Shown one piece after another: positions 48,001 through 51,000 of a DNA stretch of 64,000 bases. A program made the translations under genes and the position numbers. The DNA comes from Macrostomum lignano (lineage: Eukaryota), in NCBI GenBank assembly GCA_002269645.1, contig NIVC01001289.1:43286-107285 (forward strand), written 5' to 3'. The notes below the pieces were generated by a model that worked only from the letters and a program-made list of their open reading frames with translations, ran no database searches and was not told the DNA's origin. Positions within the stretch are counted from its first letter, which is position 1. Each line of letters begins with the position of its first letter.

Positions 48001-51000
48001 CATCTGTTAGATACGGATGTCACCTGTTAGACAGGAGTGTCACCTGTTAGATACGGATGTCACCTATTGAAAATTCTCATTTCATTGATCACTGTCTGTA
48101 ATCCCCCAACTCTTCACCAACTCTGGCAGCTGTACAACTTCACAGTGTACATTCAGGAGGATTCTGCCTACGGCTCCGTCGACGCCAACGGCAGCTGGAA
48201 CGGTGTTGTCGCCGCTCTAATCAACGGCCGCGCCGACGTGGCCTGCGTCGATTTGACGCCTAATTCGGCAAGAGCCGAGGTGATTGATTTCACCGAAGCG
48301 TACTTCTCCACCAACATGTCAATTCTATACAAAAAGATTCCTCCAGACGCTACTAAAGAGATGTTTCAGTTCATGTTTCCACTGCACACGTCTACCTGGT
48401 TTTATTTGCTGGGCTCAATGCTAATTGTGGCCTTCGTGCTGGCAATTTTGCACAGAATCAGCGCCAATCATCAGCATTTTGATCTGCAGTACAGTCTGTT
48501 CTTTTTGTTTGCCTCTCTGGTGCAGGTAAATCATGTTTTAATTCAAAATGGCTGGCTGTTCGGGCTCTTAGAAGCATTAGTAGTAAAACTTCCAATCCAG
48601 GATTCAAACGCAAACCATAAAGTGGACTGCGAGACCAAAGATCCCTGACGAGAATAGGACCTGCTTAGAGTGCCATGTGAGTGGATAGAAAGTGATCGTT
48701 GTATCCTGTTTTGAGTGTAGTTGGGAATTTTTACGGTGCTCCCAGTGATAGATTTGAAAAGGAAATCTCTGATAAAGTTTGAACTTTAAAGACCTTACTT
48801 AAGTAGGTTTTGAAGTAACTCGAGAAAAAAATAGAAATTCTAGCAAAATGACATCAGAGACGTCAATTCAAACAGCGGCTTAAAAATTGGTACCGTTGCG
48901 TCAGTAGAATTTTTTAGTTTTAATAAACAGATCAAATCAATGAAAGTATGGGGAAATATAAAAATTACCCCCCGGTGTGCGCACTTATTCATAGTAAAAA
49001 AAGCAAAAAATGTGGAAAGTCCTGTCAGCGATTTAGTTGCTGTTAGACTTATGATTAAGGTTAAGGAGATAGGTTTGGGTGGACTTTTAACGCACGGTCA
49101 CAAATCAATTGGCGACAGGTGTTAGATTGTTTGTTTGTTAGTTTTTTAGTTAGTCAGTTTGTTTGTTTGTTAGTTTTTTAGTTAGTCAGTTTGTTTGTTT
49201 GTTCGTTAGTCATTTAGTTAGTTAGTTTGTTTGTTTGTTTGTTTGTTTGTTTGTTTGTTTGTTTGTTAGTTAGTTAGTTTGTTTGTTTGTTAGTTTGTTA
49301 GTTTGTTTGTTTGCTAGTTAGTCAGTCAGTCAGTCAGTCAGTCAGTCAGTCAGTCAGTCAGTCAGTCAGTCAGTCAGTCAGTCAGTCAGTCAGTCAGTCA
49401 GTCAGTCAGTCAGTCAGTCAGTCAGTCAGTCAGTCAGTCAGTCAGTCAGTCAGTCAGTCAGTCAGTCAGTCAGTCAGTCAGTCAGTCAGTCAGTCAGTCA
49501 GTCAGTCAGTCAGTCAGTCAGTCAGTCAGTCAGTCAGTCAGTCAGTCAGTCAGTCAGTCAGTCAGTCAGTCAGTCAGTCAGTCAGTCAGTCAGTCAGTCA
49601 GTCAGTCAGTCAGTCAGTTAGACAATTTCTACTTTAGTTGTCTGTGAGTTGTCTTCAGTGGCAAAAGAAAATGTTATTTGATCAATCCCCTCGCAGGGCA
49701 TTGTCGGCCATCCTCCGAACCGGCCCAGCGGTCGGATTGTTGTGAGCGCCTACTGGCTATTCGTCCTGGTCCTGCTCGTAGCCTACGTTGGCAACTACGC
49801 AGCCATGCGAGTGCTGGCCCGACTCCAGTCTGAAATCACGACAGTAGTCAGCCTGCTAGACCAGAGCACCTACACCTACGGAACTCTGGCCAATTCGTCC
49901 TTATCCGCGTTCTTCAAAGATTCCACATTTTACGACATGCGACAGGTTTACGCTTCGATGCGGCGTTTCGAATATGGATTATTCGCAAATGTCAGCGCAG
50001 CGGAAGCCGCAGTCAATACTGGGACATTTGCCGCGATATTCGAAACGACAACTAATTACTATTTGCAGCAAACTATCTGCGATTCCGTTGTCACTGGGCA
50101 GTTTGAGAACACGGCTGTAACATTTGGCGTGCCGAGGCACTCTGATTTGAGGCATTGGATCGATTTGGAGTTGCAGAAACTGTTGAGCAGCGGGAGACCC
50201 CAAGAGTTGTATAAAAGGTAAGTCCGATTTTCCCGTGATTTATTTTCACTAATTTGTTTTACCTGTAATGCCCTGGCTAAGCCGGCTTGTAGCCTAGTGG
50301 TTAGAGCGTCGGACTCACGCCTGAACGGTCGGAAGTTCGATTCTCAATTCACTCGTAACAATTTGTGTTCTTGGGCAAGACAATTAACTCTGCATTGCTT
50401 CAGTTCACCCAGCTGTAAAATGGCTACCATTATTTATATTTAAATATTTACGAATTAATTCTTATGAATGGGTGCGGCAACATCCCCTCCCCCAGTCCTT
50501 GGACTTAACAGCTGTACGCAGCCTTCAGATACGTCTCGCAATAGCTTCGCAGTTGAACTATCGGGGGGGGGTTACATATTTGTCTATTATGGCAGGTGTA
50601 ATCAATTGTTACTGATATTATTATTATTGTCAATATTATTACCAATATAACCAATCATAAATTCCAATAGCTATTATTATTATACCCTAACAACTGTACT
50701 CCATTATCTAGGTATTTCATCACCCCAGAGCGGCTGAAACCAAATTGCGCCAATCACGCTCTTGTTGGCATCATCCCTACTGAGCCAGACAGCTTGAAAC
50801 CACATACGGGAGCTCTGACCCTGCAGAACACACTGGGTCTGCTAGTCATCAACGTGATTGGCTGCTTTCTGACATTGATTTCGGCAACTTTCGAACGGTC
50901 ATGGCAGTCTATCAGTAAAAGGCGGGCTAAAAACAAAGAGGAGTCAGTGCCGGTGAAACGAAGAAGCGCCGTTACGGAGCTGCTGAGCCGGGAGTCGCGT

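Follow-up and report, generated by a model that had tools for sequence, protein, structure and literature searches.

Two paralogous ionotropic glutamate receptor genes of Macrostomum lignano with ligand pockets probably suited to an agonist other than glutamate

Two genes encoding subunits of ionotropic glutamate receptors (iGluR), designated A and B, were analyzed in a stretch of 64,000 nucleotides of the flatworm Macrostomum lignano (assembly GCA_002269645.1, contig NIVC01001289.1, positions 43,286 to 107,285 of the forward strand), hereafter the window. Both subunits retain the residues that anchor the backbone of an amino-acid ligand, but have lost those typical of recognition of the glutamate side chain, so that another small amino acid is the probable agonist. 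It appears fairly probable that both are activated best by a small, non-acidic amino acid, either alpha or gamma, that glutamate is at best a weak agonist and that A and B differ in ligand; the candidate ligands would be glycine, alanine, serine or D-serine, or gamma-aminobutyric acid (GABA). The sequence does not allow a single ligand to be named, and for B even less than for A.

Gene models and composition of the ligand pocket

Gene A comprises 10 exons and encodes a protein of 847 amino acids (aa), and its paralog, gene B, comprises 11 exons and encodes 837 aa. Every intron of both genes is of the GT-AG type and both frames are open, as read across the splice junctions; the spliced translations coincide residue for residue with PAA69806.1 (A, BOX15_Mlig022707g1) and PAA69807.1 (B, BOX15_Mlig005297g1). 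The exons encode the amino-terminal domain (ATD), lobes S1 and S2 of the ligand-binding domain (LBD), the membrane segments M1, M3 and M4 and the pore loop.

42010-51006, forward strand: gene A
42010-42112, 43641-43820, 44091-44599, 46165-46341, 46951-47076, forward: A, exons 1-5
47179-47298, 47379-47495, forward: A, exons 6 and 7, first half of S1
48130-48525, forward: A, exon 8, end of S1, M1, start of pore loop
49697-50217, forward: A, exon 9, end of pore loop, M3 and S2, including Leu640, Thr695 and Cys704
50712-51006, forward: A, exon 10, end of S2, M4 and C-terminal tail, including Cys762 (50746-50748) and the stop codon
60396-52976, reverse strand: gene B
60396-60315, 59971-59798, 59694-59522, 58092-57793, 57078-56899, 56445-56320, reverse: B, exons 1-6
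56186-56067, reverse: B, exon 7
55969-55853, reverse: B, exon 8, first half of S1, including Lys386
55113-54718, reverse: B, exon 9, end of S1, M1, start of pore loop, including Ser465 and Ser467
54380-53857, reverse: B, exon 10, M3 and S2
53297-52976, reverse: B, exon 11, including the stop codon

A sequence-only reading that preceded this analysis concerned the interval 48271-50044, which takes in LBD-coding exons only; the genes extend over 42010-51006 (A) and 60396-52976 (B). The coordinates and residues that it gave for A, namely, Arg at 48271-48273, SSL with Leu at 49901-49903 and Glu at 50042-50044, are correct in the spliced model.

Pocket positions are given in the numbering of mature GluA2 and were aligned by three lines: phmmer against the PDB, a MAFFT alignment of 95 sequences and the secondary-structure register of an AlphaFold2 model. 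By phmmer, A matches GluA2 with E=1.6e-39 and without gaps through all three pocket motifs, with the Arg of A on R485, SSL on G653-S654-T655 and Phe-Glu on L704-E705 (GluA2 segments 'ltitlvreevidf' and 'ygtldsgstkeff'; 'aaifetttn' opposite 'ayllestmn'). The pocket columns of the MAFFT alignment are identical to those of phmmer. In the AlphaFold2 model of A, residues 636-640 form a strand and a helix begins at 644, as in the strand/helix-F register of GluA2; residues 687-692 form another strand, with a helix beginning at 693, as in its beta10/helix-I register. The residues at the 13 positions are as follows (A, forward strand; B, reverse strand).

E402: A Gly406 (47379-47381); B Lys386
Y450 ('lid'): A Leu431 (47454-47456); B Phe411 (55894-55892)
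P478: A Asp485 (48250-48252); B Ser465
T480: A Thr487 (48256-48258); B Ser467
R485: A Arg492 (48271-48273, codon AGA); B Arg472 (54972-54970)
L650: A Leu640; B Val
G653, S654, T655: A Ser643, Ser644, Leu645 (49895-49903, codons TCG TCC TTA; Leu645 at 49901-49903); B Thr623, Ser624, Tyr625 (54182-54174)
L704, E705: A Phe691, Glu692 (50039-50044; Glu692 at 50042-50044, codon GAA); B Tyr672, Asp673 (54035-54030; Asp673 at 54032-54030)
M708: A Thr695; B Leu
Y732: A Val717 (50117-50119); B Ala698 (53957-53955)

The backbone-anchoring set, that is, Arg485, Thr or Ser at 480 and an acid at 705, is retained in A and B, in agreement with the earlier statement that both subunits keep the Arg binding the alpha-carboxyl group and the acid binding the alpha-amino group (Arg492 and Glu692 in A, Arg472 and Asp673 in B). 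The glutamate-type motifs GST and L/M-E are absent: A carries SSL and FE, and B carries TSY and YD. The replacement of GST by SSL and TSY, also reported earlier, falls in the same columns by all three lines of alignment, and no Ser or Thr was found at the equivalent of position 655 (Leu645 in A, Tyr625 in B). A and B are unlike at 11 of the 13 positions, and the earlier suggestion that they may differ in ligand is therefore plausible.

In the proposed mechanism, A and B would be subunits of a tetrameric ligand-gated cation channel, in which the upper-lobe Arg and Thr/Ser, together with the lower-lobe Glu/Asp, would clamp the carboxylate and the amine of an amino-acid ligand. The Gly-Ser-Thr of helix F and the Leu/Met before the acid, which provide space and hydrogen bonds for the gamma-carboxylate of glutamate, are replaced by Ser-Ser-Leu and Phe in A, and by Thr-Ser-Tyr and Tyr in B.

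Architecture and position among iGluR

A and B are subunits of the iGluR superfamily with complete architecture. Their layout is represented by a signal peptide, ATD, LBD, M1, pore loop, M3 and M4, in the domain order S1-M1-P-M3-S2-M4, and Pfam domains PF10613 (Lig_chan-Glu_bd; 6e-23 in A, 9e-24 in B) and PF00060 (Lig_chan; 9e-19 in A, 2e-14 in B) were found in both. The AlphaFold2 model of A was built on the 95-sequence alignment; a single-sequence run with a predicted local distance difference test (pLDDT) score of 44 was discarded. The mean pLDDT of the model is 82.7, with values mostly of 88-97 in the LBD blocks and 75-91 in the ATD blocks, and helices were predicted at 531-554, 563-576, 586-621 and 787-828. 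The best Foldseek matches of this model are full-length GluA2 and GluK2, with about 870 aligned columns. For the ATD (42010-47076 in A, 60396-56320 in B), no Pfam match, including ANF_receptor, and no PDB sequence match were detected, and its sequence similarity is confined to other M. lignano paralogs; according to the model, a periplasmic-binding-protein-type ATD fold is present in A, recognizable from the predicted fold only.

The lower-lobe disulfide (C718-C773 of GluA2) is represented by Cys704/Cys762 in A and Cys685/Cys743 in B, in columns that are invariant or nearly so. The M3 gate motif SYTANLAAF is replaced by AYVGNYAAM in A (49781-49807, forward) and AYVTNYAAT in B (54296-54270, reverse); five of the nine positions are altered in each, and what is retained is Y, invariant in the family, and N, A and A, which are nearly so. 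In both subunits, the Arg after the gate motif arrives two residues sooner than usual. The Q/R site is occupied by Gln in both genes (Gln576 of A, 48523-48525, forward; Gln556 of B, 54720-54718, reverse). Four residues further, Gly stands in place of Asp/Glu (QGIVG in A, encoded by 48523-48525 and 49697-49708; QGITG in B, encoded by 54720-54718 and 54380-54369). The acidic residue at this position is crucial to polyamine regulation (Singh et al. 2025), so that polyamine block of A and B may be weak.

A and B resemble AMPA-type GluA2 and kainate-type GluK2, the best PDB sequence match and the best fold matches of A, in domain order, disulfide and Q-site Gln, but differ from them in the absence of GST, L-E and the acidic residue past the Q site, in the altered gate and in an ATD without detectable sequence similarity. 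Unlike NMDA-type subunits, they have Gln at the Q/R/N site of the pore, and no NMDA-type sequences were found among the 150 best relatives.

For comparison of the pockets, 84 relatives outside the Macrostomum clade were used, including AMPA-, kainate-, delta- and phi/epsilon-like proteins of many phyla. Gly653 is present in 63 of the 84 and Thr/Ser655 likewise in 63, while Tyr or Phe occupies position 450 in 77 and position 732 in 82 of them. Four lower-lobe positions covary into two states: the first (58/84) combines Gly653, Thr/Ser655, a non-aromatic residue at 704 and Glu705; the second (16/84) combines non-Gly653, non-Thr/Ser655, an aromatic residue at 704 and Asp705. The second state takes in delta-like proteins of Asterias and amphioxus, with motifs SSL/WD, SNL/WD and SSL/WE. 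It is matched exactly by B and by the A homeolog g4, which has Asp692, and the A of the window deviates only by Glu in place of Asp. The frequencies of Gly653 and Thr/Ser655, together with this covariation, indicate that the pocket signature is a real family-level character state and not a chance pattern in the alignment. Within the sequences compared, A and B stand out by lacking the lid and hinge aromatics.

Outside Macrostomum, the LBD and transmembrane domain (TMD) of A and B share 26-31% identity with any sequence, with no preference for AMPA-, kainate- or delta-like proteins. In a neighbour-joining tree (412 LBD and TMD columns, 100 bootstraps, without named NMDA, epsilon or lambda outgroups), A and B form a monophyletic group with three other clusters of M. 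lignano in 100 of 100 bootstraps. The helix-F and beta10/alphaI motifs of these three clusters are SVY/YS, TVT/GD and TVT/SD. The sister of the clade is of the non-GST type in 78 of 100 bootstraps, but is mostly a single long-branch Haliotis sequence, and the tree therefore does not fix the placement of the clade. By these comparisons, the clade is seen only in Macrostomum and is fast-evolving, and does not permit assignment to the AMPA, kainate, delta or phi types. Membership in the delta (GluD) subfamily, hinted at by the SSL motif, is backed neither by the tree nor by the identity to delta-like sequences (26-30%), and A and B were not placed there. Non-canonical pockets occur across the whole Macrostomum clade; in one member, P0007 (A0A1I8JER3), helix F reads SVY and beta10/alphaI reads Tyr-Ser, so that the acid for binding of the ligand amine is missing.

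A and B lie tail to tail, with stop codons about 2 kb apart, and share 33% identity over their full length. Intron positions and phases are common to both, except for one additional intron in B: exon 3 of A (44091-44599, 509 nucleotides) corresponds to two exons of B (59694-59522 and 58092-57793). Pfam matches to Lig_chan-Glu_bd and Lig_chan were found in open reading frame (ORF) fragments on both strands of the window, and no further copies of A or B are present within its 64 kb. In an exhaustive HMMER search of exon 9 of A against 1.84 billion representative proteins, the 847-aa protein was matched with 99% identity and the 837-aa protein with 43%. When part of the A protein was used in a word-indexed search for homologs, three weak matches were obtained, the best from Capitella with 25% identity, too few to build an alignment. 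Database names of A and B proteins are 'hypothetical protein', 'Glutamate receptor' or 'PBPe domain-containing protein'.

BOX15_Mlig022707 (A) and BOX15_Mlig005297 (B) are each represented by homeologous copies g1-g4 in the assembly GCA_002269645.1, and in every case the A and B copies share a contig and have consecutive accessions. Pocket residues are the same in the three full-length A and four B proteins compared, with the exception of Glu692Asp and Val717Thr in A-g4 (PAA50603.1), at the equivalents of positions 705 and 732 (window 50042-50044 and 50117-50119). Since all structural hallmarks are retained at 33% identity between A and B, the comparison argues for maintenance of both genes over a long period.

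Agonist preference and rival explanations

According to the rules of Ramos-Vicente 2018, an amino-acid ligand is expected where Arg485 is combined with an acid at 705; Gly653/Thr655 points to glutamate, and Ser653 next to a non-polar residue at 655 points to glycine (PMC6307864). The last rule fits A (Ser643, Leu645) and fails in B (Thr623, Tyr625). Experimental data on other receptors agree with the direction of this rule. Replacement of GST by SSV in GluA2 led to the loss of glutamate potency and favoured alanine and glycine (PMC13648236). The epsilon receptor GluE1alphaA of Trichoplax (Singh et al. 2025), with SSI in helix F and Phe732, is activated by glycine, alanine, serine and valine, and not by glutamate; the substitutions S653G and I655T, with or without F732Y, switched it to glutamate, so that positions 653, 655 and 732 govern the preference for glycine or glutamate (PMC12226733). 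A and B share with this receptor a hydrophobic pocket and a residue other than Tyr at 732, and A also a helix F of similar type, but GluE1alphaA belongs to another subfamily and phylum, and its Phe732 is replaced by Val in A and Ala in B.

The statement of the sequence-only reading that position 655 is hydrophobic in glycine-binding GluN1 (SSV) and in GluD (SAV) agrees with the motifs given in PMC13648236. GluN1/GluN3 (SSV, WD) and vertebrate GluD2 (SAV, WD) resemble A in Ser653 and a hydrophobic residue at 655, and resemble both A and B in the aromatic residue before the acid and in the Arg and acid anchors. They differ in that A has Leu and not Val, and Phe-Glu and not Trp-Asp, and in that helix F of B contains Thr and Tyr; at the Trp704-Asp of glycine-type pockets, the residues are Phe-Glu in A (Phe-Asp in its homeolog g4) and Tyr-Asp in B, aromatic but not Trp.

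Other observations show that the rule does not name the ligand, and some of them weigh against a small non-acidic amino acid as the agonist. The GluD of Acanthaster planci (AcaGluD; Rosano et al. 2024, Wang et al. 2026) has SSL in helix F, the motif of A, and an aromatic residue and an acid at beta10/alphaI, and it resembles A and B in its conserved Arg and complete ATD-LBD-TMD layout. It prefers GABA, and the glycine rule is thus unreliable (PMC10861852, PMC13648236). Its half-maximal effective concentrations are 13 uM for GABA vs 7.8 mM for glutamate (PMC10861852), a preference that fits a small non-acidic agonist. It differs from A in Trp-Asp vs Phe-Glu, and the delta-type upper-lobe Glu at the E402 equivalent is replaced by Gly in A and Lys in B; the delta-2-like relative from Asterias in the comparison set has the same SSL/WD as AcaGluD. 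Further, a GSL receptor of Exaiptasia is glutamate-selective, an SQP receptor of Nematostella responds to glutamate, T655V alone leaves the selectivity of GluA2 unchanged, L714T creates no glutamate activity in AcaGluD, and Y-D at beta10/alphaI, as in B, is found in glutamate-selective receptors (PMC13648236). The aromatic residues at Y450 and Y732 are lost in A (Leu, Val), and that at Y732 is lost in B (Ala), and the pockets therefore match no characterized class exactly. Pairwise ratios of nonsynonymous to synonymous substitution rates (dN/dS) among homeologs are 0.45-0.74, obtained from 7-47 substitutions, and with so few substitutions constraint is weakly shown. Closely related paralogs of amphioxus are unlike in agonist.

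Because of the exceptions to the rule (AcaGluD, Exaiptasia, Nematostella, T655V), glycine or D-serine is only one option among several. The earlier prediction of a glycine- or D-serine-like agonist holds in so far as A fits the published rule, but it is weakened by the GABA-gated AcaGluD with SSL and by the failure of the rule in B. Gating by an amino acid other than glutamate, proposed at the same time, agrees with the kept anchors and the loss of GST and L-E, although it relies on a motif rule with documented exceptions.

Of the rival explanations, it is unlikely, albeit the least so, that A and B are not gated by amino acids alone and represent chemosensory receptors similar to insect ionotropic receptors (IR), depend on obligate co-receptor partners, or serve as non-conducting GluD-like synaptic organizers. 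The clade is lineage-restricted and fast-evolving, as are the IR, which are likewise lineage-specific relatives of iGluR with changed pockets; the ATD is unrecognizable by sequence, constraint looks relaxed, the clade member P0007 has Ser in place of the acid at 705, and the gate diverges from SYTANLAAF. The GluD of oyster gave no currents in oocytes (PMC10861852). A and B, however, retain a complete ATD, the disulfide of the LBD, Gln at the Q site and Y, N, A and A in the gate. Divergent insect IR reportedly lack, as a rule, the equivalents of Arg485, Thr/Ser480 and Glu/Asp705, whereas A and B keep all three. Membership in the insect-type IR was rejected on the grounds of the ATD fold and the retained Arg, Thr/Ser and acid.

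It is rather improbable that the main agonist remains glutamate or aspartate, with its side chain recognized by the hydroxyls of Tyr625 and Tyr672 in B or by Thr695 in A. The native GSL and SQP receptors that respond selectively to glutamate and the Y-D of glutamate-selective receptors (PMC13648236) speak for this explanation, as do the AMPA receptors as the best sequence and fold matches of A. All glutamate-selective receptors in the alignment of Wang et al., however, have Gly at the first position of helix F (PMC13648236), whereas this residue is Ser in A and Thr in B. By comparison with the 84-sequence set, both pockets fall into the class of non-glutamate type, and the SSV double mutant of GluA2 lost glutamate potency.

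There is a similarly small chance that the two genes represent a flatworm-specific class tuned to a ligand outside glutamate, aspartate, glycine, alanine, D-serine and GABA, such as a bulkier amino acid with a hydrophobic or aromatic side chain, or a chemosensory cue from the environment, with A and B perhaps forming heteromers; the basis is the loss of the nearly universal aromatics at Y450 (Leu in A) and Y732 (Val in A, Ala in B). Decay of A and B as duplicates without function is highly improbable: dN/dS is not far under 1 in some comparisons and recent duplicates are many in M. lignano, but the frames are intact in all copies read (three of A and two of B), the splice sites are canonical, another full-length B protein is recorded, and every structural hallmark and the invariant family residues are present at 33% identity; the pseudogene reading was rejected.

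With respect to a small non-acidic amino acid as the agonist, iGluR gated by ligands other than glutamate (glycine, D-serine, alanine, aspartate, GABA) are already known from ctenophores to chordates; none has been characterized so far from flatworms, and the literature searched contained no mention of Macrostomum iGluR. Knowledge of the ligands of A and B would provide a spiralian data point on the frequency of switches in ligand preference, and the two genes would put the helix-F and beta10/alphaI rules to a natural test, with SSL and Phe-Glu in one, TSY and Tyr-Asp in the other, and no hinge Tyr. Such a result would refine, not overturn, existing knowledge and would be no surprise to specialists. 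M. lignano is a tractable laboratory flatworm, in which RNA interference and transgenesis are possible, and the physiological role of A and B is therefore testable.

Repeats and neighboring genes of the window

Tandem arrays occupy most of introns 1, 3, 4, 7 and 8 of A, and a further one lies in the last intron of B; these arrays give long spurious ORFs on both strands. The repeats and neighboring genes found in the window are as follows.

42245-43599: 20-mer x67 tandem array, A intron 1
44627-46091: 57/19-mer x25-77 tandem array, A intron 3
46348-46889: (TGTC)x134, A intron 4
47569-48065: 22-mer x23, A intron 7
49120-49618: (TTGT)/(AGTC) runs, A intron 8
53407-53752: (TCTA)x86, last intron of B
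1710-4088, reverse: M13 (neprilysin/ECE-type) zinc metallopeptidase, a single uninterrupted ORF of 792 aa with the motif HEIGH
about 38760-39730, forward: exons of a TMEM234-family gene, directly upstream of A
12631-13086, reverse: ORF with a weak match to the NSUN5 ferredoxin-like domain (E=2.6e-5)

The last intron of A contains, at about 50270-50430, a stretch resembling the head of a tRNA-derived short interspersed nuclear element ('gcctagtggttagagcgtcggactcac...ggttcgattc'), in which no tRNA was called by ARAGORN. The metallopeptidase ORF matches the Pfam domains Peptidase_M13 (5e-38) and Peptidase_M13_N (3e-17). The TMEM234-family neighbor is also annotated on a homeologous contig (L001, 7006-8453, PF10639). 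The ORF at 12631-13086, judging by its domain match, probably represents one exon of a gene for an rRNA methyltransferase.

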